IMG/VR virus record: IMGVR_UViG_3300034072_000758
Location: 124,001-188,000 of that record
Direction: 5' to 3' (one strand)
DNA length: 64,000 nucleotides
How positions within the stretch are numbered: position 1 is the first letter of the stretch; every line of letters begins with the position of its first letter. The notes below the pieces were generated by a model. The model did no database searches, had not been told where the DNA came from, and was given only the letters and a program-made list of their open reading frames with translations. Shown here one piece after another: positions 3,001 through 52,593 of this stretch. The translations under genes and the position numbers were made by a program.

Positions 3001-5422
3001 TGTTCAGACGAATATTATACAGAACCTTCTCAACCCATGTTGCTGGTGGGTCGATTTCTGAAAGAGTTCCGTTTTCCAAGAAAGTTAAGATCGTTTGATT
3101 AAACTTGTTTTTGAAATATGTGTATTCGTGCTCAACAAAATTTATAGCTGCCACAACATCGAAACGAGAGTCACTGGCTACAAGCATAGTCTTCAACAGA
3201 GGGTTTCTGTGTTGAATGATGTAGTCACCATATCCGAAATACTTTTCAGTATCGCGGTAGTTGTTGATGCTATATGCGCTTCCGGCGAAGTTCGACTGTC
3301 CGGTCATGATCGAATTGAAATGATCGAACCACTTGTTTTTGTCGATAAATTCAACTTCTTCGTTATTTGGGTTAGCTTGTAGGTTCAGGGGTGTTGAGTA
3401 AACGCCATTAGCAATCTTTGTCTGGGAACTGAAATCCGGGTTCAAAAACCAATTATTCGAAAACTCATTTGTATTCCAGATGCGGTGATAGTAATAACCA
3501 ACGATCTCTTCGTTCTCAGCATATGTCACGCGATCCGTCATCGAATAGACTTGGAAAATATGTTTGTCGTATTCATTTAATACGGTCGGGAAACCAAGAA
3601 CGGAATCAGCCACACCATTCCCAATCTCATATCCGAATAGTTTGTTCCCGGCGAACGAAGATGTTGGATAAGTTAGTTCATCATCCAACTTGTTTTTGTT
3701 CGAATCATAGAGTTGGAACAGTGGCGGCACACCCGAATTATAAGCTTGGGCCAAGACCCATTGTGTTCCGGTGAAGCGGTATTCGTTGTAGTGATGGAAG
3801 TCCGAATAAACTTGTGGAATAGCTACACCATTGGCGTCACGCACTCCATTTCCCGGTACGAGACGAACGATGTCACCCAATTGTGGAGCGCCTTCGGAAA
3901 TCAGTTCAATAACCGCTGCGTTACCCCCCGTAGGCAATTCGATTTCTTCGTTGGATACGACACGATAGATACGTTGGTTCAAACCAACTTCAACGGTCGA
4001 GTTGGACTGAACGACCAAAAGGCGATCATTCGGTTGAAGAACATATGAGTCGGTTGTGCCGGGATTGACCACGATACTACCAACATATTCACCATTTATT
4101 TCCCCGAAGAACTTACCATTGATGTGTGACAGAGTAACTTGTTCTTCGTCCCATACGTTGTTGTCATATGGGTACAAATCCCAATGGTCAATAACATCGA
4201 GATCATCCGTGAGCATGATTGCTTGAACGTCTGGTAGACGATTTGTACCATAATCATAGAGTTCTATATTCGGAAGGAACTCGATAATAGGACGCACGGC
4301 TTTCTTGGCATTTAGATCAAGGTCGGACCACTTCAAAGAATTTTGGTGTATCCATAGGTTTTTGAGAGACCAAGCATTGCGATCCAGAGAGCGTCTGTCG
4401 TTCAAAACATAAACGGGTGTCTCTGAACCAGCATCTTGTGTGTGATCATCTGTAAAAACAATCGATGTCCCAACTCCGTCAACGATGAACACCTTACCCA
4501 AGGATACCCCATCATTCAGACGAAGGCGCATACCCGAAGTGATCTCAACTTGGTCGATTTCTTTCCAGTATTCGGGGTTGAATGTATCGGTCGCTGTATG
4601 TTGTGTGATACAGAGATAATTGCGGGTTCCATAGTAAACGACTTCCCCAACGTTGTAGACGCGGCTTGAACGCACGTAGGACGCCCCAGAGAAGCCGTAA
4701 GAGTAGGCTTCCCAATATTGGAATGGGTGGAGTGCTTCGGCGGTCTTACCCTCGTATACGGCTTTTAAATCGCCATAACGGATGACTTCAATAATCGACC
4801 CAGCAGCCGGGGTAGCGATCTGTGCCTGACCGTTCACGATGTCGGCGGTGACTTCTTCACCGTTGACCAAAACGGACGGATGCTCGTCATCACCACCAAA
4901 GCCTAGAATGACCGATGGGAGTGTGAAGCGATTTTGAACGCCATCGCCGGTATAAACGTTTCTCGGCGCTTTCAAATTCAGCAGGGTCTTTTCATATTCG
5001 TCATCTGTCAAGCCACCCATCCAAATGTATTGGTTCGGGTTATTGATAGCATCCAGATTGATCGGCGGTGACCAAGAGTAATAATCCCCGGAAAAGAGGC
5101 GCGAATGATCTTCGACGTTTCCGCCCATGCTGTCGAGATAGTTGATCAGATCATCGTAGAACAGGGTATAGGCGACGTTACCATTCACCTTGCTGATCAT
5201 GGTTGGTTCGAGTTGATAATACTCGCGCTTGATGTCCTTCTCAGGAATGTAAAAGTCTTTTGTTGAGTCGAAATACGATGGCTTCTGTCCGATATAACCG
5301 GTCAAGGTTTCAGACGCACCACTTTGAAAGAGGTGATCGACCGTTGCGGAGAAGAAGTTCTTAAGAGTTTCGGTCTGATTGACAACCGGAAGGCTCTCAA
5401 CGAAAAAACGTTTCTTTGTCAT
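1..5422 (-). CDS. Giant virion structural protein (baseplate/tail-associated), >1800 aa, truncated by the left window edge
   Basis: Hand translation from ATG at 5422 gives MTKKRFFVESLPVVNQTETLKNFFSATVDHLFQSG...YYQLEPTM...RLFSGDYYSWSPPINLD. The frame is also open at the window edge and where spot-checked. No complete minus-strand ORF is in the track, consistent with run-off. Contains a CBM5/12-like motif near 1490-1603 (DWRASTNYAINTKISYNGKIYVALRSHLSSAVFESAFW). Preceded by TAAATA-N5-ATG. Confidence 0.85.
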   Translation of the reverse strand, partial: MTKKRFFVESLPVVNQTETLKNFFSATVDHLFQSGASETLTGYIGQKPSYFDSTKDFYIPEKDIKREYYQLEPTMISKVNGNVAYTLFYDDLINYLDSMGGNVEDHSRLFSGDYYSWSPPINLDAINNPNQYIWMGGLTDDEYEKTLLNLKAPRNVYTGDGVQNRFTLPSVILGFGGDDEHPSVLVNGEEVTADIVNGQAQIATPAAGSIIEVIRYGDLKAVYEGKTAEALHPFQYWEAYSYGFSGASYVRSSRVYNVGEVVYYGTRNYLCITQHTATDTFNPEYWKEIDQVEITSGMRLRLNDGVSLGKVFIVDGVGTSIVFTDDHTQDAGSETPVYVLNDRRSLDRNAWSLKNLWIHQNSLKWSDLDLNAKKAVRPIIEFLPNIELYDYGTNRLPDVQAIMLTDDLDVIDHWDLYPYDNNVWDEEQVTLSHINGKFFGEINGEYVGSIVVNPGTTDSYVLQPNDRLLVVQSNSTVEVGLNQRIYRVVSNEEIELPTGGNAAVIELISEGAPQLGDIVRLVPGNGVRDANGVAIPQVYSDFHHYNEYRFTGTQWVLAQAYNSGVPPLFQLYDSNKNKLDDELTYPTSSFAGNKLFGYEIGNGVADSVLGFPTVLNEYDKHIFQVYSMTDRVTYAENEEIVGYYYHRIWNTNEFSNNWFLNPDFSSQTKIANGVYSTPLNLQANPNNEEVEFIDKNKWFDHFNSIMTGQSNFAGSAYSINNYRDTEKYFGYGDYIIQHRNPLLKTMLVASDSRFDVVAAINFVEHEYTYFKNKFNQTILTFLENGTLSEIDPPATWVEKVLYNIRLNKTSDSPFSLSKMGGGQFYIPITPASIGVGITRKPDFFFDDTMGGIKFIIGHDGSRTPAFNDFRDDIILELEHQLYNAIEPALLTERPVFDITEHVYIGGEYSRDEYLNVMESSFYKWASENNLDYRDNNSFDPDDYFTWNMTNGGAFDGSQLAGNWRGIYLKYFDTTRPHSHPWEMLGFTDKPVWWDIEYGAAPYTRGNTKMWTDIEEGRIRQGQRAGLSARYARPNILNILPVSEEGALLDPVEARIVIVLPIMSDAASEWVYGDCSPVENLWRLSSAYAYAQAIASFLLKPAKFIEEGWDTINNRKIDNGQYINLTTGNRPKNSELYVHGEFLDRERVYACGIQQFIGEYIISLGADPAIFGNAVRGLNVMLGHKMGGFTSVSDMVTTTDNFGIIPSDDVNLVLYQSAPIKSDFYSGIIVTWNGSGWTMSGYDDSQPWFNIIPPMITSPRYKITTGTSEEITYNDWRASTNYAINTKISYNGKIYVALRSHLSSAVFESAFWDEVGTVTASDNVSVLVYSQGEDEVIKIPYGTTFYTPQEVTDFILGYERYLESRGWLFDEVENELVINWKLSVKEFLEWSSVEYEAGESIFFSPSTYKAKYKTDHGLVSSVMTSVNGKKNIVGYTGVSKTSEQVAVSRREDETVFQSTDGDIYGIRVKVREIEHAILFSNQTIFGNLIYNPLFNLRQPRIRILGKRSVDWTGRLDAPGYVIANNEIVPNFMKSTDDFLNMYDIEDHNNATFATQARHNIGYSKRDYLSNLAINEIQQFEFYQGMIQQKGSVGTFDKLLRSDYVDQNRELAFREEWAFKIDQYGGVARNKTASFLIQQSDMSSDSEIVHFSVGNTIGNDMIEIYDNTTVDTRWVERADDPLNVFQTRTTYAPRDTDLPVSGYVRTNEVNNIVFSYEDIQTLTHISAGDTVWVHSVDASRGLTPLDTQWYFVGVYNNSTTYWNTANLVLTTNSSYVVENMDNDIVFRSPSALAPFITTSTGLIPEAGKT

Positions 5423-8451: not shown

Positions 8452-8471
8452 CTTATTCCCTATGATAGTTG

Positions 8472-8545
8472 TGACCACGGCAGGATTCGAACCTGCGACC
8501 GTCCGCTTAGAAGGCGGATGCTCTATCCATCTGAGCTACGTAGCC
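8472..8545 (-). tRNA. tRNA-Arg (anticodon UCU)
   Basis: GGCTACG-TA-GCTC-AGATGGATA-GAGC-A-TCCGC-CTTCTAA-GCGGA-CGGTC-GCAGG-TTCGAAT-CCTGC-CGTGGTC-A folds as a cloverleaf; followed by CAA, so CCA is not encoded. Confidence 0.95.
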
Positions 8546-8881: not shown

Positions 8882-10006
8882 ATGACGAATACGGTTTTTG
8901 CATCGACATGGGTGCGCTCTAGGTCACCAATCGAATCCACACATTCTTTCATTACCCCCACGGATGAAGTTCTGGCGGTGGTGAAATACAATATGATCAA
9001 CGGTGTTATCGCGGTTATCGATGATGCCAATAATGGGTCATACAAAATCACTCTTCAATCCAAGCCCAAACATGATACGGAAAACAGCGCCCTGACCCGC
9101 GCTGACACTATGATCGGTGACGATAATCACGTACTCAAGAAGCTAATGGATGCTGCCTTCTCTGATGATGATTACGAAAAGTATGATCCGTATCAGGGAA
9201 AGCGTCGTAATACCGTGTCGATGCCATTTGGGATGATGATACCTCCGCAAATTCGCGCTCAAATAGCTTTGGTGGATGATCGCGCCAATACTATAATAGA
9301 GAAAATAAAAACCGGTATCCAAAATACCTATTTCCAAAAGCTGTACGATACCGGCCAGCGCGCAAATGTCGATGATCTAATCTCTGATCTCAAGCTCAGA
9401 AAATACAGCGGTCAGTTAACCTTGGAGCAATCCAAAGATTATTATAGCCGCACCAAGTATCAACTCGGTCGCGGGTTTTTGGAAGTGGCTACGCTCGATG
9501 AAACGCTTGCTGGTAGAGTCGTATACTATACACCCGAACTAATGGCCCACGAGAAGGTAATTCCCTTCGTCACGCGCAAGCAATATATTGAATTTCTTTC
9601 ACGGTACGATCAATCGCGCGACGGCGTATTGACGGAAAGCGCAAGCAAGTTGATTGAGAAATTCGGCCTGACTGACGCGGAAATGGGTGAATTGCTCCTT
9701 CATCGACCAGTCCTTCTTCCCATGATTATGAAGCTGATGCCCGTACCAGAAAGCATTTTGGTTGAAGTCTTCAAAGGTCATCCTTCGGTATTTCATAGCA
9801 TCGACGCCACGCTGGAACAGTTTCAGCTATTCGTGAGTGCCAACAGCGTCAATTACACACTCAAGGTACTCAAGGATTTCAAATCGGAATGGCTCGAATG
9901 GCTTAACACCGAACTTCAAAAACACCGGGGCAGTCTGTTATACGCAGCGGACGATCATGCCAAGGTCAAGAAGCTGATGAAATCACCCCTCACCCAGCAA
10001 GCGTAA
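8882..10006 (+). CDS. Hypothetical protein (helical-repeat C-terminal half)
   Basis: 374-aa ORF with no recognised catalytic motif. Confidence 0.7.
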   Translation: MTNTVFASTWVRSRSPIESTHSFITPTDEVLAVVKYNMINGVIAVIDDANNGSYKITLQSKPKHDTENSALTRADTMIGDDNHVLKKLMDAAFSDDDYEKYDPYQGKRRNTVSMPFGMMIPPQIRAQIALVDDRANTIIEKIKTGIQNTYFQKLYDTGQRANVDDLISDLKLRKYSGQLTLEQSKDYYSRTKYQLGRGFLEVATLDETLAGRVVYYTPELMAHEKVIPFVTRKQYIEFLSRYDQSRDGVLTESASKLIEKFGLTDAEMGELLLHRPVLLPMIMKLMPVPESILVEVFKGHPSVFHSIDATLEQFQLFVSANSVNYTLKVLKDFKSEWLEWLNTELQKHRGSLLYAADDHAKVKKLMKSPLTQQA

Positions 10007-10369
10007 ATCATTCTCACGATCCAAGAACTTCCATTCGACTTTCGATGGGTCAAAGAATTGGAGTTCTTGGATCACTTGCTCTACGTCCAGATCGGAGCAT
10101 GTATAAAGGTCAAGTTGAAGAATCGCCGGATCACATTCATCCCATGAATGAATTACGAAATGACTGGTCTCGATAATGGCATCGGCAGTCATTCCGCGAT
10201 TGCCTTCAACGGCGCAATAACGAGCGCGCGGCGCGGCCAATTCCTTCATTCCGATGTTCTTGATCAACGCGGACATCCACGCGCACACAGCGTCACAATC
10301 CTCAGCCAACGGCGGTCTTTTTATTTCGGCACGAACGATTAGATGCTTGTGGCGGTTGTCTGGTGTCAT
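9983..10369 (-). CDS. speD: S-adenosylmethionine decarboxylase proenzyme (pyruvoyl-dependent) family
   Basis: GMTADAIIETSHFVIHSWDE...LQLDLYTCS matches AdoMetDC motifs. Confidence 0.8.
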   Translation of the reverse strand: MTPDNRHKHLIVRAEIKRPPLAEDCDAVCAWMSALIKNIGMKELAAPRARYCAVEGNRGMTADAIIETSHFVIHSWDECDPAILQLDLYTCSDLDVEQVIQELQFFDPSKVEWKFLDRENDLRLLGEG

Positions 10370-10429
10370 CGAAATATTCCCCTGAAATAAGTGTAGGAAT
10401 ATTTATAATAAAACCGTCCTTATGAAAAA

Positions 10430-10792
10430 TTATTCCACTCCCATCACAAGCATGGTGACATGAAGATCGACATCTGAGTCAGATAAAAGCTCATGCCGCT
10501 TCTGAACGCGAATAATACCACCCGGTAATTCGGTGATGGACACATGTGATGATACGATACCTACCAAAATTGGTAGGTAACAGTTCTCATAACGATACGA
10601 GAAGAAGTATTCAATACCAAAAATTTCTACACGATGAATAAGCAATCTATTGCTGAAATATATTGTCTCTTTCTTCGGTATTTTTTTGCGGCCCGTACCA
10701 GTATACCCATAGTGTTTGAAGAAGAAGGCATCAACTTCTTCTTTTCTATATTGTGTAAATTTCAGCCAAATTCGTTCGTCATATAAATTCAT
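10430..10792 (-). CDS. Hypothetical protein with C-terminal motif
   Basis: Ends SDSDVDLHVTMLVMGVE*. Confidence 0.6.
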   Translation of the reverse strand: MNLYDERIWLKFTQYRKEEVDAFFFKHYGYTGTGRKKIPKKETIYFSNRLLIHRVEIFGIEYFFSYRYENCYLPILVGIVSSHVSITELPGGIIRVQKRHELLSDSDVDLHVTMLVMGVE

Positions 10793-11205
10793 AACTGATC
10801 CGAAAGTAATACAATTGACATCATATCACTTTCTACGGTCTCAAGGGAAATATTATCTACAAGCTCGTCAATATAAAACATGAGCGTATTTGAGAATAGA
10901 CCTCGGCTCACCCAAGTAAATATCCAGTCGGGTGAGTAAATCTTGAACAACTCAGTGGTACGTTTACTGTTATCGGATTCCCACTTCCAAATCAATTCAA
11001 AGTTATACGGAACACCGTTGATGTAACGATACTCATATGAATGACTATCGTAATCACCTTTCAATTTATATGAAAAGTTTTTGCGCCCGTGCTCTACACA
11101 AAAATCCTCTAAAGTCTCGTCAACATAGTAATTTGTTGTCAAATTATCTTTGATCTTGTGGACGAACTTCCACATATCACTATTCTGATCGAGACTATAG
11201 AGCAT
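10789..11205 (-). CDS. Hypothetical protein with C-terminal motif
   Basis: Ends LETVESDMMSIVLLSDQL*. Confidence 0.65.
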   Translation of the reverse strand: MLYSLDQNSDMWKFVHKIKDNLTTNYYVDETLEDFCVEHGRKNFSYKLKGDYDSHSYEYRYINGVPYNFELIWKWESDNSKRTTELFKIYSPDWIFTWVSRGLFSNTLMFYIDELVDNISLETVESDMMSIVLLSDQL

Positions 11206-12569
11206 TAGTACGCCGCGTAAACCTTGATGAAGTCTTCGACCGTTTCAGCAGCCGAATCCATTTCCTTGACAGGAATATAGCTCGAAGGCCCCATCTTGTT
11301 CAAGACGGCATCGACATAGCACGAGAATTTTCCTTCGGGTGAAGTTGTCAGAACACGGTGGATACCAGCCATGTCAAGCAAACGCTGATGACGATCAACA
11401 AATGCGGTATCGACCGAAACAGAAACCTTTTGCTGGTCGAACAGCAGTTTCATGATCGTGGCATCATCTTCAACATTTCCAAAATCGAAACGTTCTTTGC
11501 CTTTACCGAAGCCCACCTCCTTGTAACCCAGCAGAAGGATTGGGAATTTTTGAGCCGCAGCTTCACGCAAGATGTTGGCGGTGTCCGAGATCGGAACAGA
11601 CCCGAAGACGTGTTGGATCATCACCTTCCGGTCTTGGTAATAAGACGGAAAGATGTTGCGAATGTTGATAGCCGTCTCGAAGTCAGCCATTGAGTGAACC
11701 GACACGCCGATAGCACCGATCTTCCACATGATGTTCTTGACCAATTCCACGTCTTGCACCCACTTATCAGTGTAAGTGGTGAAGTTCGGAACAATATTTT
11801 TGGAAACGATGTAGTCGATAATTGCGCCGAAGTCCGGGTGAGCGGTCGTTTCTCCGCCACCGAGAGCAATTTCGAACACACCCATTTCCGCCAGAATATC
11901 GACATGCTTCTTGATGGCATCAAGAGGGGCATGTTTACCCTTCAATGTGGATGATTGGTAGCAAAACGAACAACCCGCATCACACCAATTGGTGATCTTC
12001 AAATCAACCAATTCAGGCATAGTGGATTTGGTATATTCGTTTGTTTCCCCACCGTTATCCAGTCGGACACGAATTTTTGTACCATCGGTGGTATCGAAGA
12101 GGACAATGTAATCACCATCAATACGAACCTTTTTTGAGTAGCCTGATGTGTTGATTGCCGTTTCGGGGGTGTAACGAGAAAAAGTATCGCACACAGTTTC
12201 ATCGCTGTTGTCATTACCCCCAACAACCACGATATTTTTATGTGAAAGAAGATTTACCCGGAACCGAAGTTCAGCCTCAGTGTCGATAGATTTATGGCTT
12301 TGGTGATCGACGTACATTTCGGTACGCAGCTTGTCGAGACCTACACTCTTGGCGAACTCAGTATCAAACAGAGCTTCATTGATAACTTGCGCAGCAACAT
12401 AGCGCAGCTTTTCTTCGGTCGAAACCAGAGAGAAATCTTGCCATCCATAATCACAAGGGATGTCGTCATACATTTTCGCAAGGTCTTCATTCGGGACAAC
12501 AATGATCGAATGTGATGATGACGAATTGGTTGCGAAGCCAAGACGAATGTTGTCAACGATGAAGTCCAT
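11205..12569 (-). CDS. Radical SAM protein with N-terminal 'GFATNSSSSHS' domain
   Basis: CDAGCSFC (CxxxCxxC) and IALGGGE. Confidence 0.88.
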   Translation of the reverse strand: MDFIVDNIRLGFATNSSSSHSIIVVPNEDLAKMYDDIPCDYGWQDFSLVSTEEKLRYVAAQVINEALFDTEFAKSVGLDKLRTEMYVDHQSHKSIDTEAELRFRVNLLSHKNIVVVGGNDNSDETVCDTFSRYTPETAINTSGYSKKVRIDGDYIVLFDTTDGTKIRVRLDNGGETNEYTKSTMPELVDLKITNWCDAGCSFCYQSSTLKGKHAPLDAIKKHVDILAEMGVFEIALGGGETTAHPDFGAIIDYIVSKNIVPNFTTYTDKWVQDVELVKNIMWKIGAIGVSVHSMADFETAINIRNIFPSYYQDRKVMIQHVFGSVPISDTANILREAAAQKFPILLLGYKEVGFGKGKERFDFGNVEDDATIMKLLFDQQKVSVSVDTAFVDRHQRLLDMAGIHRVLTTSPEGKFSCYVDAVLNKMGPSSYIPVKEMDSAAETVEDFIKVYAAY

Positions 12570-27361: not shown

Positions 27362-27916
27362 ATGGAATTTCTTTATAGACCCGAATTTTGGCTGGTGACC
27401 TTGCTATTAGTTTTAGCAGTCATCACGCTATCTAATCTATGGTCCGATTTCGCATTTATGTATTATACCCGCAAAGGCCGCTATCGCAGCAAATACTATG
27501 AATTTCCCAATGTGTTCAAATACATATTCTTTAAGAAGAAATTCAATCCAAAAGTTTACAACCTACCAAGAAAGCTTGAGGAAACATTCTCACCTCTCGC
27601 GGCTTATCACGGTCGGTTCAGGAGTCTGGAAATTATTGGTGGAGTTCATATCGAACTATCCGGCGTCGGTGAGTACCATCCAAACATTCTAACGGTTGAA
27701 GGTGACCGATGGATTTTATCTAATGATCCAAACGTGATGATGCCGATTCCGTTTTTTGATCGCTGGCGCGCGATCTACGGGAAATATCAATATATTTACG
27801 TAGGCAATAGCTTTTTCTTCAAGGGTGATGTAAAGTGTTTCGAAGAGGATTTGACCATTATCCTCATGTGTATTGATGACCACATAAAAGAAAAATTTAG
27901 GCCCATTTCATTATGA
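27362..27916 (+). CDS. Membrane-anchored C-terminal-motif protein (G-N/D-xxx-FExD subfamily)
   Basis: N-terminal TM; FFKGDVKCFEEDLTIILMC. Confidence 0.7.
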   Translation: MEFLYRPEFWLVTLLLVLAVITLSNLWSDFAFMYYTRKGRYRSKYYEFPNVFKYIFFKKKFNPKVYNLPRKLEETFSPLAAYHGRFRSLEIIGGVHIELSGVGEYHPNILTVEGDRWILSNDPNVMMPIPFFDRWRAIYGKYQYIYVGNSFFFKGDVKCFEEDLTIILMCIDDHIKEKFRPISL

Positions 27917-28668
27917 TACTCGGAAGCCGCGCCCGCACTGATGAATTTTTCAAAACCTCTGGGATTAAAGCCCATGAGTTGCTGACACGCATGGCTGATC
28001 GGAGAGACGGTCTTGAAGCCGAAACGCTTGAGCACAATCGATACGGAACAGTCCGGGTAATCAATCTGGATGGCGTCTATATCCTGATTGAACTTGGTAA
28101 CGATAAGTCTTTGGCGCGGGGTAGAAACAAGCATGAGGTAGAAGTCCTACCCCTGATCATTCACGATTATGGTCCAGACAAAAATACCCTCAAGCGCCAT
28201 GTTCAACCAGAATTAGTCTATGAGCCTATTCGCTCGAAGGGCTATCGAGCCAACGTATATGGTTCTTACACTGTTGCGACCAATCGCTTATTCTATTTCA
28301 GAGGGCAATACGAAAATGATCATGACGGTTATCGTTTGGTAGAGTTTCACAAACCCCCGATTCTACATTACAAAAATGATGATGTCATGGATGCCATACA
28401 ACGCATCGCCATCCATCTAAGGTATGAGGATAGAGGGAACGTTCGGCAGACAAGGTATCAACACGAGCGTTGGAATTTTGCTATGAATTTTGGCGCACGA
28501 TACGTATTTACCGAATACGACAATATGCCATTATATAATGCGCTGACATTCAAACAACCGGATTACGAAATCATCTTTGACAATGATTTTAATCAATTCT
28601 CGGCATTCTTGTGGGGAAATAAAGAGGATTTCGATGAAACCCTCACGCTGTCGATCCTCACCAACTGA
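27913..28668 (+). CDS. C-terminal-motif protein (G-N/D-xxx-FExD subfamily)
   Basis: Ends LWGNKEDFDETLTLSILTN*. Confidence 0.7.
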   Translation: MILGSRARTDEFFKTSGIKAHELLTRMADRRDGLEAETLEHNRYGTVRVINLDGVYILIELGNDKSLARGRNKHEVEVLPLIIHDYGPDKNTLKRHVQPELVYEPIRSKGYRANVYGSYTVATNRLFYFRGQYENDHDGYRLVEFHKPPILHYKNDDVMDAIQRIAIHLRYEDRGNVRQTRYQHERWNFAMNFGARYVFTEYDNMPLYNALTFKQPDYEIIFDNDFNQFSAFLWGNKEDFDETLTLSILTN

Positions 28669-28915
28669 GGTGAATGTCACACGTTAGGACATAATCAGGT
28701 TGCCAGCCGTCGATGGTGAAGCCGCGATCTTCCAGTATGGCGACCACTTCGCTCGCATTGTGTGGATCATCGATGTAGACCCTGACCCAGCCGGAAGAGA
28801 GGTCGAAACGTCGAGCGTTATGAGCCTCGGCTTCCAGCCGCTTGTCGAGATAGCTTTCGATTGACAAGGGTTCGTCGTCGCTGATGAAATCCCTCATGTT
28901 TTGAGCGGTGATCAT
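28658..28915 (-). CDS. Hypothetical protein
   Basis: 85 aa, ATGA-coupled. Confidence 0.6.
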   Translation of the reverse strand: MITAQNMRDFISDDEPLSIESYLDKRLEAEAHNARRFDLSSGWVRVYIDDPHNASEVVAILEDRGFTIDGWQPDYVLTCDIHLSW

Positions 28916-29244
28916 TTAGGAGCCTTATGTTTGAGGATTACATCGTCGCTGACCTTGTAAGCCAGCACGGCGAGTTGATCGTAGTAATCCAGCGTCATGT
29001 CAACGATCTTGTCGATTTGAGCGCGGGTACATACGATCCTAACCGGGATCATGCGTTCCTCGAACAGTTCACCTTCCCTCGAAATCCACTGGCCTTTGGC
29101 CGGGGATAGGATCGTGAGACCACCACTTACGGCCCGAACCTTCTTGTCCCAGACTTTGTGGAAGCGAGTGCGAATCGGCTTACCGTCCAACCGGCGAATG
29201 GTCGGAACGAGAATTTCCCACATATACAATTTCGGCTGGGTCAT
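28912..29244 (-). CDS. Conserved phage hypothetical protein
   Basis: AGGAG SD; TTGACA-N16-TACAAT promoter at 29273-29300. Confidence 0.7.
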   Translation of the reverse strand: MTQPKLYMWEILVPTIRRLDGKPIRTRFHKVWDKKVRAVSGGLTILSPAKGQWISREGELFEERMIPVRIVCTRAQIDKIVDMTLDYYDQLAVLAYKVSDDVILKHKAPK

Positions 29245-29296
29245 AAGAGGCTCCTATATTTTATACAGGAGTATTGTATCATACGTTGAGTATATG

Positions 29297-29650
29297 TCAA
29301 GATAAGCTTAGAGCTATTCTCATCAGTATCTCATCTACTTCATTTCGAGAGAATTTGGGATTGAAGAAATATTTCTCGCGCTTACTACCAGTCATGATGT
29401 TTAATAAATTCTCTCTGGTATCGTGCCACATTATTTGTTGTAGCGCATATTGATTATCTGTATTCAACATACCTATGATAAAAAATTCACCAACATTGGT
29501 TCGAACAACGGTTTCTCGACCCAGACTAATACGCTTACTATAACGTTCACGAGCCTCGTTCGCCAGAAGCTCAATTAAGCCGTCTATGTCTTTACGATTA
29601 ATATATCTGGACATGAAAGAATTGATGTTGGTTACAGTGATATATTTCAC
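29297..29650 (-). CDS. C-terminal-motif protein
   Basis: Ends RNEVDEILMRIALSLS*. Confidence 0.7.
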   Translation of the reverse strand: MKYITVTNINSFMSRYINRKDIDGLIELLANEARERYSKRISLGRETVVRTNVGEFFIIGMLNTDNQYALQQIMWHDTRENLLNIMTGSKREKYFFNPKFSRNEVDEILMRIALSLS

Positions 29651-29901
29651 GATAAAACCAACATAGCTTTCATAAGCACTTCATCCAGACGCTCCGACGA
29701 AGCGTTCGACATATATTTCACATTTTTGTCGCAACCGAATGGCTCAATAATAACTTCCTCATAACGAAGACGATGAAGAACAGCCGAAAAAGAGTCCCAA
29801 GTAAAATCCCCAGCTTCAAAAGTTGGCCAACGTTTCCTAGTCAATTTATCTAATTGTTCCCAGACCTCGCGCGGCACTTCGCTGTGATAGGTTGGTCTCA
29901 T
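29647..29901 (-). CDS. C-terminal-motif protein
   Basis: Ends ERLDEVLMKAMLVLS*. Confidence 0.7.
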   Translation of the reverse strand: MRPTYHSEVPREVWEQLDKLTRKRWPTFEAGDFTWDSFSAVLHRLRYEEVIIEPFGCDKNVKYMSNASSERLDEVLMKAMLVLS

Positions 29902-30218
29902 GACATCGCCAATTTCAAAGTTATCAAAACATCATCGAAATGCTTTGGACGACAGTTGATGTAATAGAATGACCGAAGCTGGATTTTAATATCGCCATAG
30001 TCCAAACTGGACAGGACCGGAACGTAATCCATCTTTGGAAACCTTTCCCTATTGAGCCAAGTGCCAGTCAGCAACGCTTTACCAACAGGTAAAGGGTTCA
30101 GACGACTACCCACATCATTTGTCAGAATGCTTTGACGCTCGTACAATGGCTGTATGACTGGTAAGAAGCGTTCGCTCCATACGCGGTTCGGAATTTTGTA
30201 AAACCCCTCGCCGCGCAT
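29898..30218 (-). CDS. C-terminal-motif protein
   Basis: Ends KHFDDVLITLKLAMS*; start uncertain (30218 or 30251). Confidence 0.6.
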   Translation of the reverse strand: MRGEGFYKIPNRVWSERFLPVIQPLYERQSILTNDVGSRLNPLPVGKALLTGTWLNRERFPKMDYVPVLSSLDYGDIKIQLRSFYYINCRPKHFDDVLITLKLAMS

Positions 30219-30231
30219 AAGCTGGTCAATG

Positions 30232-31791
30232 CTAATTGAGATCGTCCCCATCGGGCCAAGTATCCGTGATCAATGGTGTGTCGGAATAAGCCATCCGAAT
30301 ACGCTCAGTAATGAACGGAATAAACGGATGACTCATACGAAGTGTCTGGTCCAAAGCCCACATCAAAGTGTTAATAGCTTCGGGATCACCATTGTAAAGT
30401 CTTTGCTTGGATATTTCAAGATAGAACCCGCAAAGATCATCGAACAAAAACTTTCTGAAACACATAGCCGCATCACTATAACGCAGATTAGCCAAATGCT
30501 CAGAAATCTCATTAGAAGCCCGTAGAGCCGTTTTATAGATCATCCGGTCACACTCTTGGGCCAAGGTCAACTTACCCGTCTCTGGCCTTCCTGCGCGGTC
30601 CCACTGACCCAATGTGAACTTAGATGCGTTCCACAACTTCGTACACAAAGATTTGGCCCCTTTGAACTTCTCGTCCCACAGCTTCATATCCATCGCTGGG
30701 GTTGTGTTCTCGGCCAACGCAAATCGCATCGTGTCGCAACCATACGTCTCGATAAGTTCAAGCGGATCGATACCATTACCCTCGCTCTTGGACATCTTCT
30801 TTCCATCTTTGTCGAGGATCAATCCGTGAAGGTAGATCGTCTTGAACGGAAGCTGATCGGTCAGGAACAAGCCCATCATCAGCATACGAGCACACCAGAA
30901 GAAGAGAATGTCCGAAGCCGTCTCGATCATATTGGCTGGATAGAACTTCTTATAGTCCTCGGTCTGTTCCGGCCACCCCAAGGTTGCGAATGGCCATAAA
31001 GCTGAACTGAACCACGTATCCAGACAGCCCTCAGCTTGGGTCCAGCCGCCATCAAGAAATTCCAGATACTTCCATTTTTCGGAAGTATCGAGAATTTTTA
31101 TCTCACCGTTTTTGGTGAAGATCGGAAGACGATGGCCCCACTTGATCTGGCGAGAAATACACCAAGGCTCAATACGATACAGGAAATCACGGATCGTGCC
31201 TTCCTGCCCTTTTGGATGAATATTGATGTTGCCTTGATCAAGCTCACCTAGCAATCGGTTGGCCAACAACGTCATGTCGAGATACCATTGACCCTCGGCC
31301 TCGTAAAGCATTCCCTGTTCGTGGCAACGTTTTAGGGCTTCGGTAGTAGCCTTGGAGTAACGGTCGTCCAGAGTAAACGTTTCCCGGCTCCAATCAGCCG
31401 AAGCACCGCAACGGCGTAATTGTCCGGTGATGGTAGATTTGAGGTTCTGTTTATAGTTCTGGGAATATGGGTAGAACTGTGTGTCGTCGGTCGGGTCAAG
31501 CCCTTCGGCGAGCATGGCTTCTTCAAGCTTACGCTGCGTGGCAAGGCCAGCATGATCCGTACCGGGAAGCCAAAGAGTATCGAACCCTTTCATCCGGTGG
31601 TAGCGTGTAGAAATGTCTTGAAGGGTGGCGAACATCGCATGGCCCATATGAAGGATGCCGGTGATGTTCGGGGGAGGCATTGGGATGAAATATGGAGTCC
31701 CGGTGCCAGATGGTTTGAAGTGGTTATTTTGTTCCCAACGGGAATAGATCAAAGCTTCGTCATTCGCATGATCGAAAAACTTTGATGTCAG
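30232..31791 (-). CDS. valS: Valyl-tRNA synthetase, minimal (no CP1 editing domain, no C-terminal coiled coil)
   Basis: PPPNITGILHMGHA, PGTDHAGLATQ, WCISRQIKWGH, LDTWFSSALWPF, KMSKS. Homology extends upstream of the track start (LTSKFFDHANDEALIYSRWE); start codon uncertain (CTG 31791 or TTG 31752). Confidence 0.92.
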   Translation of the reverse strand: MTSKFFDHANDEALIYSRWEQNNHFKPSGTGTPYFIPMPPPNITGILHMGHAMFATLQDISTRYHRMKGFDTLWLPGTDHAGLATQRKLEEAMLAEGLDPTDDTQFYPYSQNYKQNLKSTITGQLRRCGASADWSRETFTLDDRYSKATTEALKRCHEQGMLYEAEGQWYLDMTLLANRLLGELDQGNINIHPKGQEGTIRDFLYRIEPWCISRQIKWGHRLPIFTKNGEIKILDTSEKWKYLEFLDGGWTQAEGCLDTWFSSALWPFATLGWPEQTEDYKKFYPANMIETASDILFFWCARMLMMGLFLTDQLPFKTIYLHGLILDKDGKKMSKSEGNGIDPLELIETYGCDTMRFALAENTTPAMDMKLWDEKFKGAKSLCTKLWNASKFTLGQWDRAGRPETGKLTLAQECDRMIYKTALRASNEISEHLANLRYSDAAMCFRKFLFDDLCGFYLEISKQRLYNGDPEAINTLMWALDQTLRMSHPFIPFITERIRMAYSDTPLITDTWPDGDDLN

Positions 31792-31811
31792 ATTACGTCC
31801 AACAGGGTCAT
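31788..31811 (-). other. Possible 7-codon upstream ORF (MTLLDVI) overlapping the valS start region
   Basis: GGAGG-N8-ATG; its TGA overlaps the in-frame CTG of valS (CTGA). Confidence 0.4.
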
Positions 31812-31893
31812 TTGATTATCCTCCAAAGGATTAAGGGTTGAAATATTTTAATACATTATTTAGAATGCTAAGGTCAAGCCAAATGGTATTTTC

Positions 31894-32256
31894 GTGCTCC
31901 CATTTAACTCTTTCGTCACAATACTAAAAACCGCTCCATACAAAGAGTATGTCAAGGGTGGCGCGGGTTACGACATGGTTAATGGTAACTTTACTGTAGA
32001 ATTGCGAACTTACGATTATAGAAATAATCAATTCCTACAGTCGTACAAGATGAGTATTTACTGGAAAGGGCTGGAAATATATCAAGGCATATTGACGCTG
32101 GACACTGGTAATATTAGAATCGATGGTGATACTGTTGTCGGAGGAAGATTTCTCCACATAGGACCAAGTGGTTATGATATTAAACCCCACCGCATAGGGT
32201 TCTTGGGCGAAGACTCGCACGAAGAAATGATGATCGAAATTTTGAGGATGATGTGA
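31894..32256 (+). CDS. C-terminal-motif protein
   Basis: Ends DSHEEMMIEILRMM*. Confidence 0.6.
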   Translation: MLPFNSFVTILKTAPYKEYVKGGAGYDMVNGNFTVELRTYDYRNNQFLQSYKMSIYWKGLEIYQGILTLDTGNIRIDGDTVVGGRFLHIGPSGYDIKPHRIGFLGEDSHEEMMIEILRMM

Positions 32257-32897
32257 TGGGTGATGATCATATTGACGCAAGAAACAGCGTATGGTGGGCT
32301 TGGATCATGGTGTTGGTCGGAATTGTCGGATTAGCTGGTATCGGTTTTCGGGTATATAAAATAATTACCGGGATAGCTCCACTCAAATCATTTTGGTATG
32401 AGTTTTGGACCGTAACACCAATGCTTATTAGTACAATGCTTGGTTTATTTTTTGCTGTATTGCTCTATCATTATTATACCTATTACCAATACGAATTGCC
32501 ATATTCGGATAAGTATCCTCGCAATATATATCCATTTCCAAAAAGGAACGAGTTTAAGAAACTTATCCTGCGCAAAAACGATACGTTGGATGTTCAGTGG
32601 TTCTTGAAGAAAGCCATTGACGCCGCCCCATATTTCCACACACCGGACCCACGCCTTCCCCACAGGCTTTTTCACGATGTCGGAAAAATTGGATCAATTG
32701 ATCTCGATTTTTATGGAAGCATTCTGTACACAAAATATGTCCAAGGTAACGGCTGGCAGATCGTCTTTTGTAATGATCCCGAAATACAAGATTTTTTCAA
32801 AGGACAAGGTTATTATTTTGTCAATTCAAAGATGATAGTGTATGGTGATCTCGAACAGTTAGAGAACGACCTTATTACTATGAGGTTGTCTATGTAA
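32256..32897 (+). CDS. Membrane-anchored C-terminal-motif protein (G-N/D subfamily)
   Basis: Two N-terminal TMs; ends VYGDLEQLENDLITMRLSM*. Confidence 0.72.
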   Translation: MGDDHIDARNSVWWAWIMVLVGIVGLAGIGFRVYKIITGIAPLKSFWYEFWTVTPMLISTMLGLFFAVLLYHYYTYYQYELPYSDKYPRNIYPFPKRNEFKKLILRKNDTLDVQWFLKKAIDAAPYFHTPDPRLPHRLFHDVGKIGSIDLDFYGSILYTKYVQGNGWQIVFCNDPEIQDFFKGQGYYFVNSKMIVYGDLEQLENDLITMRLSM

Positions 32898-32913
32898 CAA
32901 CATTGAGCGTACC

Positions 32914-33210
32914 GTGGACGTATCTTTTCTTGTAAATCATTTTATAGAACTCACTCCATTTCGGGATGACGAGAACTATATTTCAACTACCCTGATCGGC
33001 AACACACCATGCGCCTATTATCGGTCTTTTACTAACACCAGTACCTTAGTCACAGTCTTCACACAGGACTGGATTATTGCGCCAGCACCCATAGAAGATA
33101 CACTTGATGATTCTACAAAATGGGTGTATCTTGGTGGGGAATATTATTTTAAGGGAAACGCGGAACAGTTTGAAAACGACATGATTGTCTTTAGGCTGGT
33201 GTTACAATAA
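32914..33210 (+). CDS. C-terminal-motif protein (G-N/D subfamily)
   Basis: Ends YYFKGNAEQFENDMIVFRLVLQ*. Confidence 0.72.
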   Translation: MDVSFLVNHFIELTPFRDDENYISTTLIGNTPCAYYRSFTNTSTLVTVFTQDWIIAPAPIEDTLDDSTKWVYLGGEYYFKGNAEQFENDMIVFRLVLQ

Positions 33211-33722
33211 TGGCTACAGGTCTCCAACTCGTATTGTTAATCCTCTTTTCGTCCCTCGCAATATTCGTCTTAAAGACGTTGACGAAGGGTAAGCTGTTGT
33301 TCGCCTCAAAGGATCGCCAGAAAGCTTACGCCGAATATATGATCCATAAGGGTTATATTTACAGTAAATATCAGGACCAGCGCCAGCTTCCATCCTTCAA
33401 CGTCTGGGAAAAGATGTCAAAGAAGTATATGGATTTGGAATTTATTGACGATTATTTTTCGGGCAATAGGCGCGGTGCTGATTGGTATGACGCCAACACT
33501 TTTCATTATACCTTCCCCGAATACGGTATGTTGGCCGTGGCCACGCGCGATGATGACCGAATGCTGCTGTTTTTTTCCGGTTCGGATTGGCGATTGGTTT
33601 ATCGTCTCAAGTTTGTGAACAACCTCAGCCGTGCCATATATCTCGGCGAAGGGCTGTACTTCGAGGGTAACCCGGAACAGTTCGAAAACACAATGTCGAT
33701 CATCAAGCTGAAAGCGTCATGA
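33210..33722 (+). CDS. Membrane-anchored C-terminal-motif protein (G-N/D subfamily)
   Basis: N-terminal TM; ends LYFEGNPEQFENTMSIIKLKAS*. Confidence 0.72.
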   Translation: MATGLQLVLLILFSSLAIFVLKTLTKGKLLFASKDRQKAYAEYMIHKGYIYSKYQDQRQLPSFNVWEKMSKKYMDLEFIDDYFSGNRRGADWYDANTFHYTFPEYGMLAVATRDDDRMLLFFSGSDWRLVYRLKFVNNLSRAIYLGEGLYFEGNPEQFENTMSIIKLKAS

Positions 33723-34120
33723 ACGTAAGAGACGATATTGCGTTCTGGGCTAAAATCTTAAACGCTTCTGATGTTGATCGAGTAGTCAAACTCAATGGCT
33801 ATCAGTTTAAAGCTAAGTATAACGCCAATGGTTTAGTTCAAAGTTTTGTTTCGAGATCACATAACGAGTGGCGTAGCAGTCTTATGTTGATTTTTGAAAA
33901 CAGCTTATTTCGTTTTACCGTAAACGCTGTAATCAATATTGTGGATTCAAATCGTCCGCCCTCTGATTTTCATGAACTTCCAATGTTACATACCAAACCG
34001 TTCAATCCAATAGTATTTCGGATAGAACAATATGGTTCACATAAACTCGAATTATTCGACTGGACAGAAGACGAGTTCGATAGTATGGTTATGTCTCTTT
34101 ATTTGAAGTTGAAAGACTGA
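33719..34120 (+). CDS. C-terminal-motif protein (DxxFW subfamily)
   Basis: Starts MNVRDDIAFW; ends TEDEFDSMVMSLYLKLKD*. Confidence 0.72.
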   Translation: MNVRDDIAFWAKILNASDVDRVVKLNGYQFKAKYNANGLVQSFVSRSHNEWRSSLMLIFENSLFRFTVNAVINIVDSNRPPSDFHELPMLHTKPFNPIVFRIEQYGSHKLELFDWTEDEFDSMVMSLYLKLKD

Positions 34121-51360: not shown

Positions 51361-52593
51361 ATGTCTGACATCGAAAATCCCCATGATCACCGCAACATCG
51401 GTCGTGATCTTGACCTCTTCCACATTCAGGAAGAAGGCAAAGGTATGGTCTTCTGGCACCAGAAGGGATGGCTTGTCTATCGCGCGCTGGAAACCTACAT
51501 TCGCAAGAAGCTCGATCAGCATGGCTATCAAGAGGTCAACACGCCTCTCCTGATGGATCGCGTTCTGTGGGAAAAGTCGGGTCATTGGGAAAAGTTCAAG
51601 AAGAACATGTTCATCTGCGAAACGGATGAAGACGAGTTCCTTGCGCTCAAGCCGATGAATTGCCCGTCGCATATTCAAATTTTCAATGACCGTCAAAAGT
51701 CCTACCGCGATCTCCCAATCCGCATGGCTGAGTTCGGCTCCTGCCATCGTTTCGAGTCATCTGGCGGTCTTCATGGCCTGATGCGTGTTCGCGCCTTCAA
51801 GCAAGATGACGCGCATATCTTCTGCCGTGAAGATCAGGTCGTGTCCGAGGTGGCAGACTTCATCGCCCTTCTCAAGGAAGTGTACGGCGATCTCGGTGTT
51901 AAGCTGGGGAATGTCTATCTGGCTTTGCGTCCTGAGACGCGAGCGGGAACGGATGAAGTATGGGATAAAGCCGAAGCTCAATTAGCCGAAGCTTCAAGGT
52001 TGGCGGGTGTGGAAGCGATTCCCGTAGAAGGTGAAGGCGCATTCTATGGTCCCAAGCTTGAGTTCCATCTGGAAGATTCGCAAGGCCGGTCATGGCAATG
52101 CGGGACGATCCAGCTTGACTTTGTTCTGCCACAAAGACTGGACGCTTCCTACATCAATGAGCAAGGCGAGAAACAAATTCCCGTGATGCTCCACCGCGCC
52201 ATTCTGGGAACGTTTGAACGTTTCCTCGGTATCTATATCGAGCACTGTAAGGGACGCTTCCCACTATGGATGGCCCCGGTCCAATTCTCTGTGCTTCCCA
52301 TCGTCACGGAATGTAATGACTACGGACACGAAGTCGCAGCCATCTTCAAGGAAGCTGGTCTCCGGGTTGAAGTCGATGATCGGTCGGAAACGCTAAATGC
52401 CAAAATCCGCGACAAAGCGGTCCAAAAGGTTCCATATTTGGTGATCATCGGTAAGCGCGAGCGCAATCAACGCACCGTGACGATCAAAGCTCCGGGGGTG
52501 AGCGATGAGCCTGAATCACAATGGACCCGGCCATTGGACGATCTGCCTCAGTGGATCAAAAACAATTACGGCTGGATTAAAAAATTCCAATGA
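51361..52593 (+). CDS. thrS: Threonyl-tRNA synthetase, minimal (no N-terminal TGS/editing domains)
   Basis: Begins at DHRNIGRDLDLF; KPMNCP, HRFESSGGLHGLMRVRAF, GEGAFYGPK, QCGTIQLDF, MLHRAILG; anticodon-binding domain present; 410 aa. Confidence 0.95.
   Translation: MSDIENPHDHRNIGRDLDLFHIQEEGKGMVFWHQKGWLVYRALETYIRKKLDQHGYQEVNTPLLMDRVLWEKSGHWEKFKKNMFICETDEDEFLALKPMNCPSHIQIFNDRQKSYRDLPIRMAEFGSCHRFESSGGLHGLMRVRAFKQDDAHIFCREDQVVSEVADFIALLKEVYGDLGVKLGNVYLALRPETRAGTDEVWDKAEAQLAEASRLAGVEAIPVEGEGAFYGPKLEFHLEDSQGRSWQCGTIQLDFVLPQRLDASYINEQGEKQIPVMLHRAILGTFERFLGIYIEHCKGRFPLWMAPVQFSVLPIVTECNDYGHEVAAIFKEAGLRVEVDDRSETLNAKIRDKAVQKVPYLVIIGKRERNQRTVTIKAPGVSDEPESQWTRPLDDLPQWIKNNYGWIKKFQ

Follow-up and report, generated by a model that had tools for sequence, protein, structure and literature searches.

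Can a valyl-tRNA synthetase (ValRS) dispense with its proofreading domain, and what does a huge phage do with such an enzyme? ValRS is a textbook case of the double sieve, and its CP1 domain, which hydrolyses Thr-tRNA(Val), is treated as a fixed part of the enzyme. The 64,000-nucleotide stretch analysed here (the window) belongs to a 516,805-bp virus record with direct terminal repeats and a CheckV completeness of 100, so its assignment to a phage is correct. The original prediction described, at positions 30232-31791, a phage ValRS of about 510-520 aa with intact HIGH-like and KMSKS motifs and without CP1 or the C-terminal coiled coil, and this observation is confirmed. It was read as an error-prone or trans-edited synthetase, or as a decoy or backup against host defences that attack tRNA charging, and this interpretation is only partly supported.

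Anatomy of the short ValRS

One open reading frame runs on the minus strand from 31791 to the stop at 30232-30234, and it has 519 codons counted from a CTG at 31791, or 506 aa from the first ATG/GTG/TTG, which is a TTG at 31752. The start implied by the original prediction needs correction, since no ATG, GTG or TTG lies in frame at or above 31791 and the CTG at that position overlaps the stop of an out-of-frame leader ORF. Alignment to Thermus thermophilus ValRS (1GAX, 862 aa; E=5.7e-106) places query residues 6-165 on residues 7-169 and query residues 168-514 on residues of about 358-707. About 186 residues of CP1 (about 170-357) and the last 155 residues (708-862), which form the stem-binding domain and the coiled coil, are therefore missing, and the protein ends at the position of Thermus residue of about 712. 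The Cys4 zinc knuckle, a small insertion, is also absent. Pfam finds tRNA-synt_1 (PF00133, 3.5e-99) and Anticodon_1 (PF08264, 1.8e-19) and nothing else.

The HIGH motif (HMGH, residues 48-51; 31639-31650, minus strand) aligns to the HMGH of Thermus ValRS and is nearly invariant in 108 sequences. In the KMSKS loop (residues 332-336; 30784-30798, minus strand), Lys332 and Lys335 are invariant across these sequences, and Met333, Ser334 and Ser336 are invariant or nearly so. The valine-pocket and adenylate-binding motifs PPPN, TDHAG, DTWFSSALWP and DILFFW align residue for residue with Thermus ValRS and are invariant or nearly invariant in the family. The sequence passes directly from GMLYEAEG to QWYLDMTLLA, as originally described, and in the AlphaFold2 model the place of the CP1 insertion is taken by a tight β-hairpin (residues 162-171; 31279-31308, minus strand) with strands assigned by DSSP at 162-165 and 168-171; the same gap is present in all short relatives. 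The anticodon-binding helix bundle (about residues 415-514; 30250-30549, minus strand) is kept, with helices at 373-500 in the model, and the protein ends five residues later. The model is confident (pLDDT 94.6, pTM 0.93), and its best fold match is 1GAX (TM 0.90 normalised to the query).

The best profile matches are all ValRS models. Residues 154-501 align to positions 351-697 of 860 in NF004349, one of two matching stretches, with 551.7 bits, against 238.7 bits for IleRS, while the two ValRS equivalog scores (551.7 and 516.4 bits) lie below the curated cut-offs (704 and 612) because domains are missing. These low scores and the loss of CP1 and two tRNA-contacting domains leave room for the possibility that the protein no longer charges tRNA, being a ValRS-derived paralogue that uses Val-AMP for another acceptor, or a regulator or decoy that binds tRNA-Val or its own mRNA, for example by sequestering or protecting tRNA-Val during infection. 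Synthetase paralogues with new functions exist, such as GluQRS and MshC, both of which appear as weaker hits to other aaRS of the phage. However, paralogues that left translation usually lose the anticodon-binding domain, which is here kept and conserved, the whole aminoacylation site is invariant, and the gene travels with tRNA-Val genes and other complete aaRS. A leader with a fixed Val codon, described below, also fits a link to Val-tRNA supply. This reading is considered unlikely.

Conservation and editing modules

More than 90 short relatives, counted as clusters at 45-65% identity, lie mostly on phage contigs of 0.2-0.6 Mb (up to 0.58 Mb), and one relative lies in a 1.86-Mb record. Short and full-length forms are split by one branch with SH-aLRT 100, and the short group includes the cultured Stenotrophomonas jumbo phages RAS14 and CM1. 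dN/dS is 0.10-0.19 at dS of about 0.75-1.2, and the original prediction missed that this is a large family under purifying selection and not a one-off. A decaying remnant or an assembly artefact, suggested by the absence of a canonical start codon in frame and by gene callers that cut the product to 471 aa, starting inside the HIGH motif, is close to refuted by these values. The frame is also unbroken in 22 loci from independent samples, the same DNA, including the start region, lies without differences or indels in contigs of a second sample from the same study, and the missing start is itself a conserved design. In most genomes gene callers mis-start this gene, at MPPPN or inside HIGH, so database entries are truncated. 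No near-identical DNA was found in GenBank phages, and no RNA run was found to contain the stretch.

Searches of the whole genome for a module that could edit in trans found no CP1 (PF13603, none at E<=1), tRNA_SAD (PF07973), AlaRS or ValRS C-terminal domain (PF10458), and only a noise hit for YbaK (E=0.07) with an internal stop. Neighbouring small ORFs, examined as a possible missing domain supplied in trans, gave no Pfam hits. Of the original readings, an error-prone synthetase remains the best inference. A trans-edited enzyme gets no support from the phage itself, although editing in trans by the host's own ValRS cannot be excluded. For the decoy or backup role against host defences there is no evidence for or against.

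The phage has 57 tRNAs, which include Val-AAC, Val-GAC and Val-TAC, and it encodes SerRS, CysRS, AspRS, GluRS, TrpRS and a ThrRS (window 51361-52593). This ThrRS, which the original prediction did not mention, also lacks its editing domain: it matches TIGR00418 only over positions 171-545 of 565 and has just tRNA-synt_2b plus HGTP_anticodon.

It is possible, though doubtful, that the short ValRS is accurate after all, either because threonine is rejected in the synthetic site, by a tighter pocket or by pre-transfer hydrolysis, or because Thr-tRNA(Val) is cleared in trans by the full-length ValRS that the host presumably keeps; loss of CP1 would then cost no fidelity. A related megaphage keeps CP1 in its IleRS next to the short ValRS (one unbroken ileS match over positions 36-791), so editing is not discarded wholesale by these phages. 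On the other hand, the pocket residues are the same as in Thermus ValRS at the aligned positions, and that enzyme needs CP1. The absence of a phage trans-editing factor also weighs against accuracy, while the editing-less ThrRS and a 264-aa gene with only an AlaRS-core match in another relative suggest a general tolerance of unedited charging.

The leader ORF and the translation start

The original prediction also missed the unusual start. On the minus strand at 31788-31811 lies a mini-ORF, ATG ACC CTG TTG GAC GTA ATC TGA (MTLLDVI*), in the +1 frame relative to ValRS, and its TGA overlaps the CTG at 31791. A Shine-Dalgarno sequence GGAGGA (31819-31824, minus strand) lies 7 nt upstream of the leader ATG and about 15 nt from the nearest ValRS-frame GTT. 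The same arrangement is found in 21 of 22 loci of the short clade, which appear to lack a usable in-frame start and in which a Shine-Dalgarno plus ATG opens a leader of 6-10 codons ending in (L/W/S)(D/E/N)-Val-(0-4 codons)-stop, whose stop overlaps the first conserved Leu codon of ValRS. This overlapping codon is ATG (1), TTG (1) or CTG (2) in four loci, and CTA or TTA in the rest. The leader is absent from 70 full-length ValRS loci. These controls come from a metagenome scan for more short loci, whose patterns were too general and which returned 79 full-length bacterial ValRS and one short locus. The ThrRS, SerRS and CysRS of the phage have plain ATG starts and no similar leader.

At 31794-31799 (minus strand) the leader frame reads GAC GTA, that is Asp and then the invariant Val codon, preceded by G, which makes G-GAC with Val in the A site a candidate -1 slip site. 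Among the 21 leaders, 14 read G-GAC, 4 G-GAA and 5 A-AAC, RAS14 and the locus L013 included, and each is followed by GTN. These would be single-tRNA slip sites: there is no classical X XXY YYZ slippery heptamer, and RNAalifold predicts no conserved RNA structure around the leader. GAC-to-GGA re-pairing needs a G-U pair at the middle position, and a slow A-site codon is generally more important for +1 than for -1 shifts (PMC5009743). RAS14, whose ValRS has 449 aa, has a plain ATGA overlap, which suggests translational coupling rather than frameshifting.

A ValRS-frame GTN codon located 7 nt upstream of the leader's Val codon is also conserved, and neither frameshifting nor reinitiation explains it. 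It could be an independent start, with the leader being only a small upstream ORF, since its changes are synonymous in the ValRS frame (GTT, GTG, GTC) while the leader-frame residue varies among Leu, Trp and Ser. In six loci it is GTG and lies 9-11 nt from the Shine-Dalgarno. This alternative seems improbable, since in most loci the codon is GTT or GTC, which are very poor initiators, and in the long-leader loci, including the one in the window, the Shine-Dalgarno is about 15 nt away. Moreover, substitutions at the next two codons are conservative in the leader frame (D/E/N, then synonymous Val) and radical in the ValRS frame (G/K, R/S). A GTT-reading initiator tRNA was considered and dropped, because the phage tRNA-Val(AAC) has no initiator features, namely no GGG:CCC anticodon stem. 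A tRNA-Val anticodon-loop mimic, as in a thrS-type operator, was rejected because four loci have GAA instead of GAC and no stem is conserved.

Interpretation and comparison with known systems

The explanation favoured, with reasonable though not full confidence, is that this is a working but non-proofreading ValRS, a conserved minimal enzyme of a phage lineage which keeps the Rossmann catalytic core, the stem-contact fold and the anticodon-binding helix bundle. The analysis itself establishes the anatomy, the conservation, the purifying selection, the absence of editing modules from the genome and the presence of the leader, whereas catalytic activity, charging of tRNA-Val, mischarging with the resulting mistranslation, and the way in which the leader works are inferred from sequence and model alone. 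In this view the enzyme would still make Val-AMP and charge tRNA-Val, either the host's or the phage's own GAC and TAC species, which both end in A73-CCA, and its odd AAC species. It would be unable to hydrolyse Thr-tRNA(Val) itself, so any clearing of that error would fall to the synthetic site or to the host ValRS. In Thermus ValRS the coiled coil and the stem-binding domain are reported to contact tRNA (Fukai et al.), so tRNA affinity may be poor.

Synthesis of the enzyme most likely depends on the leader. Ribosomes would load at the strong Shine-Dalgarno and ATG and reach the ValRS frame either by a -1 shift at G-GAC, G-GAA or A-AAC, while the next leader codon waits for Val-tRNA, or by termination-reinitiation at the codon that overlaps the leader stop. 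A more speculative possibility, held only tentatively, is that the synthesis is switched by its own product: if Val-tRNA(Val) is scarce, ribosomes slip into the ValRS frame, and if it is plentiful they finish the leader and stop. This would be an RF2-like recoding feedback, the first known for an aminoacyl-tRNA synthetase, and it would govern a whole lineage of proofreading-free ValRS in huge phages.

The existence of a phage lineage with cultured members that has kept a ValRS without CP1 under strong purifying selection gives a natural test of how much proofreading a virus needs during one infection cycle, what the minimal tRNA-Val recognition module is, and whether huge phages tolerate, or even exploit, Val-to-Thr ambiguity. 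The editing-less ThrRS and the AlaRS-core gene of a relative hint at a general rule. The conserved leader, which is new here, makes it directly testable whether a synthetase can be regulated by recoding or coupling at its own cognate codon. Literature searches on CP1-less ValRS, phage aaRS editing and aaRS frameshifting found nothing specific, and no paper on phage RAS14 was found.

For the leader, the closest known systems are the autoregulatory frameshift of prfB (RF2) and the leader-peptide control of pheST, in which the decisive leader codon is one whose decoding depends on the gene's own product: UGA for RF2, Phe codons for pheST, and here it would be a fixed Val codon. As in those systems, a short upstream frame would have to be left for the product to be made. 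However, prfB shifts +1 at CUU UGA with an internal Shine-Dalgarno and pheST works by transcription attenuation, while here the shift would be -1, without a classical slippery site or conserved structure, and reinitiation is an equally live alternative. Nothing comparable for an aaRS turned up in a review of frameshifting (PMC5009743) or in the other searches.

For the enzyme, bacterial ValRS (1GAX; NF004349/TIGR00422) shares the class Ia core, the pocket motifs and the anticodon helix bundle but has 862 aa against 519, with the domains that the phage form lacks, and the out-of-frame leader is absent from the full-length loci examined. The editing-less ThrRS of the same phage resembles yeast mitochondrial MST1 and archaeal ThrRS-cat, which have only catalytic and anticodon domains, but it belongs to a different enzyme class. 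The LeuRS of Mycoplasma mobile (3ZIU; PMC3643597), the second-best structural match (TMq 0.78, TMt 0.71; 18% identity), is a class Ia synthetase that has naturally lost CP1, and the short ValRS likewise lacks its editing domain while its synthetic site is intact and under selection. They differ in amino-acid specificity, and the LeuRS is the only one of its cell, in a parasite with a reduced genome, whereas the phage enzyme is an extra copy alongside a host enzyme and is also C-terminally truncated. Minimal MetRS enzymes, such as those of S. aureus (7WPN, TMt 0.81) and T. thermophilus (2D54), have the same domain set and size (about 500 aa; TMt 0.75-0.81) at about 20% identity, but the specificity motifs and best HMMs of the phage protein are those of ValRS, not MetRS.

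Domain architecture of the phage ValRS

The virus record to which bases 124001-188000 belong is 516,805 bp long, has direct terminal repeats and has an estimated completeness of 100. On the minus strand of the window, an open frame runs from 31791 to the stop at 30232-30234 and comprises 519 codons counted from the CTG at 31791, while the first ATG, GTG or TTG in frame is a TTG at 31752, which would give 506 aa. Only two Pfam models match the product, tRNA-synt_1 (3.5e-99) and Anticodon_1 (1.8e-19). Among the NCBIfam models, the first four are ValRS models, with 551.7 bits for NF004349 against 238.7 for IleRS. All of them match in two stretches, the second of which joins residues 154-501 to model positions 351-697 of 860, and the score falls under the curated cut-off because parts are missing.

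Against the Thermus thermophilus ValRS (1GAX, 862 aa; E=5.7e-106), residues 6-165 align with 7-169 and residues 168-514 with about 358-707, so that about 186 residues, which correspond to CP1, are replaced by two or three. The last 155 residues, which form the anticodon-stem-binding domain and the coiled coil of 1GAX, are also absent. The Cys-x2-Cys...Cys-x2-Cys knuckle of the Thermus enzyme is replaced by a cysteine-free stretch, which some relatives delete entirely. The HMGH, KMSKS, PPPN, TDHAG, DTWFSSALWP and DILFFW motifs all align residue for residue. The original prediction, a ValRS with intact HIGH-like and KMSKS motifs but without the CP1 editing domain or the C-terminal coiled coil, therefore holds in every particular except the start codon. 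An AlphaFold2 model built on 108 sequences has a pLDDT of 94.6 and a pTM of 0.93, and in this model a tight beta-hairpin (strands 162-165 and 168-171) stands where CP1 would be inserted.

Conservation and genomic context

A word-indexed protein search returned more than 90 short clusters (about 430-520 aa as called) at 45-65% identity before the first full-length bacterial ValRS (38-43%), and many of them lie on contigs of 0.24-0.58 Mb. In an unrooted tree of 68 rows, with narrow bacterial sampling, 30 short and 38 full-length sequences are separated by one branch (SH-aLRT 100), and the fewest changes of state is one. The cultured Stenotrophomonas jumbo phages RAS14 and CM1 (319 kb) carry a 449-aa member, annotated simply as valyl-tRNA synthetase, which falls inside the short group on a long branch. 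Pairwise dN/dS is 0.10-0.19 at dS of about 0.75-1.2, and the catalytic residues are invariant or nearly so across the family, which makes a pseudogene very unlikely. Relatives with the same leader, described below, lie on metagenome contigs longer than 1 Mb (loci L030 and L116, on contigs of 1.28-1.86 Mb, and L013, of 1.01 Mb). The 20-kb neighbourhood read at L116 is dense in small ORFs without family matches, which looks phage-like, and these contigs could be very large phage genomes or concatemer assemblies. A separate reduced ValRS-like gene of about 508 aa, at 30% identity, lies on another viral contig of 507,910 bp (locus L129, 1420-2949). It has a plain ATG, a linker of about 40 residues in place of CP1 and a degenerate KMSKS, which reads KFAKQ, and may be an independent and perhaps inactive reduction.

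ARAGORN finds 57 tRNAs in the genome, including Val-GAC and Val-TAC, both with A73 and an encoded CCA. The other tRNAs singled out here lie at 8471-8545 (minus strand) in the window and at 117291-117364 and 351587-351662 of the whole genome (G000); they comprise a tRNA-Arg(TCT), which is the one in the window, a CTA-anticodon (amber suppressor type) tRNA and an unusual tRNA-Val(AAC) with an 11-nt D-loop, whose AAC anticodon is odd for a bacterial system. The other synthetases of the genome are SerRS, CysRS, AspRS, GluRS, TrpRS and a 169-aa HisRS/HisZ-like fragment (G000 352621-352986; locus L007 1435-1944, minus strand), which matches hisS model positions of about 39-132, lies next to the two tRNA-His genes and is too short to be a complete HisRS. 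The window also encodes, at 51361-52593 on the plus strand, a ThrRS of 410 aa that matches TIGR00418 only over positions 171-545 of 565. It has only the class II core and the HGTP anticodon domain, begins with a plain ATG right at the DHR.IG motif of the catalytic core and so also lacks its N-terminal TGS and editing domains.

Searches of the whole genome found no CP1, tRNA_SAD, AlaRS or ValRS C-terminal domain, and YbaK gave only a noise hit. The small ORFs next to the ValRS gene have no Pfam matches; at least nine of those flanking it, at 27913-30251 and 31894-34120 on both strands, end in a similar C-terminal motif of acidic residues followed by alternating hydrophobics (for example ...FENDMIVFRLVLQ, ...LDEVLMKAMLVLS, ...FDDVLITLKLAMS), which looks like a paralogous array. 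Editing is not discarded by all such phages. In a 558-kb relative (locus L014) the short ValRS sits beside an 851-aa IleRS (9546-12101) with an unbroken match through CP1, and in another relative (locus L118) it sits beside a 264-aa gene (3174-3968) with a precomputed match to the AlaRS core family PF01411, far shorter than a whole AlaRS. Loss of editing domains seems to be specific to particular synthetases. In a 546-kb relative (locus L113), the short ValRS is flanked by an ART-PolyVal (ADP-ribosyltransferase-like) gene and a ribosome hibernation factor (Ribosomal_S30AE) gene, at 375-1268 and 3197-3565.

An out-of-frame leader upstream of the ValRS frame

Upstream of 31791 the ValRS frame has no ATG, GTG or TTG. 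Instead, a perfect GGAGGA is followed 7 nt later by an ATG (31811), which opens the frame that lies +1 of ValRS, reads MTLLDVI and ends in a TGA that overlaps the CTG at 31791. The same design recurs in relatives down to about 41% identity and is found in 21 of the 22 loci of the short clade that could be read, RAS14 included. The pattern is formed by an SD, an ATG and 0-2 codons, followed by Leu, Trp or Ser (TTG, TGG, TTA or TCA), by Asp, Glu or Asn (GAC, GAA or AAC), by Val (GTA, GTC or GTT), and by 0-4 codons and a stop. The stop always overlaps the first conserved Leu codon of ValRS (LTKTFDH...), and the overlapped codon is ATG in RAS14, TTG in one locus, CTG in two, including the present one, and CTA or TTA in the rest. 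The base before the Asp/Glu/Asn codon always equals the first base of that codon (G-GAC, G-GAA, A-AAC). Substitutions at these two codons are conservative or synonymous in the leader frame (D/E/N; Val GTA/GTC/GTT) and radical in the ValRS frame (G/K; R/S), so the leader frame is evidently translated. Gene callers consequently start the protein at MPPPN or even inside HIGH, although the roughly 37 residues before that are conserved and include the first Rossmann strand.

Of 70 full-length ValRS loci, 68 have an ordinary start and only one shows a chance mini-ORF, which has no SD. The ThrRS, SerRS and CysRS of the phage have ordinary starts, and one short ValRS (locus L117), which branches next to the full-length clade, has an ordinary ATG and no leader. 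The leader region of this genome is identical, with no indel, in contigs of a second sample.

By inference, the leader could work in any of three ways, and all of them make it part of the expression of the gene. The first is a -1 frameshift, in which, with Asp, Glu or Asn tRNA in the P site, the A-site codon is Val; if Val-tRNA is scarce, the P-site tRNA could re-pair one base back (GAC or GAA to GGA, AAC to AAA), and CGU or AGU would be read next in the ValRS frame. This would give homeostatic feedback of the RF2 kind. The hungry-codon principle is established, though it is said to matter more for +1 than for -1 shifts (PMC5009743), and neither a classical heptamer nor a conserved structure is present around the leader. 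The second is termination-reinitiation at the overlapped codon, which is natural for RAS14 (ATGA) and plausible for TTGA and CTGA, but hard to accept for CTA or TTA, which most loci have. The third is independent initiation at the in-frame GTN seven bases upstream. That codon is always Val in the ValRS frame, which neither the frameshift nor reinitiation explains, but it is GTT or GTC in most loci and is about 15 nt from the SD in the loci with long leaders.

Inferred function and comparison with known systems

The best reading, held with moderate confidence, is that of a working but non-proofreading ValRS that supplies Val-tRNA(Val) during infection, with expression tied to a Val-containing leader. 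The domain anatomy, the conservation, the purifying selection, the lack of editing modules in the genome and the presence of the leader are established by the analysis, while charging activity, the absence of proofreading in action and the mode of action of the leader are inferred from sequence. A ValRS-derived protein with a non-charging role is an unlikely alternative, and an enzyme whose fidelity is rescued in the synthetic site or by the host enzyme is a doubtful one, although it is compatible with the main reading. The proposal originally attached to the gene, an error-prone or trans-edited synthetase, or a decoy or backup against host defences that attack tRNA charging, receives partial support.

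The protein differs from the ValRS of Thermus in the missing domains, and an unresolved and possibly new expression mechanism is attached to its gene. In the literature searched, nothing was found on a CP1-less ValRS or on recoding in a synthetase gene, which does not prove that the finding is unpublished, and only general statements that huge phages encode up to 15 synthetases (PMC7162821) and the precedent of the Mycoplasma mobile LeuRS (PMC3643597) were found. In a Foldseek comparison of the predicted structure, 1GAX ranks first (TM 0.90 on the query), followed by the naturally CP1-less M. mobile LeuRS 3ZIU (0.78 on the query, 0.71 on the target) and by MetRS structures with target TM of 0.75-0.81. 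The protein thus has the domain set of a minimal MetRS-type class Ia enzyme.
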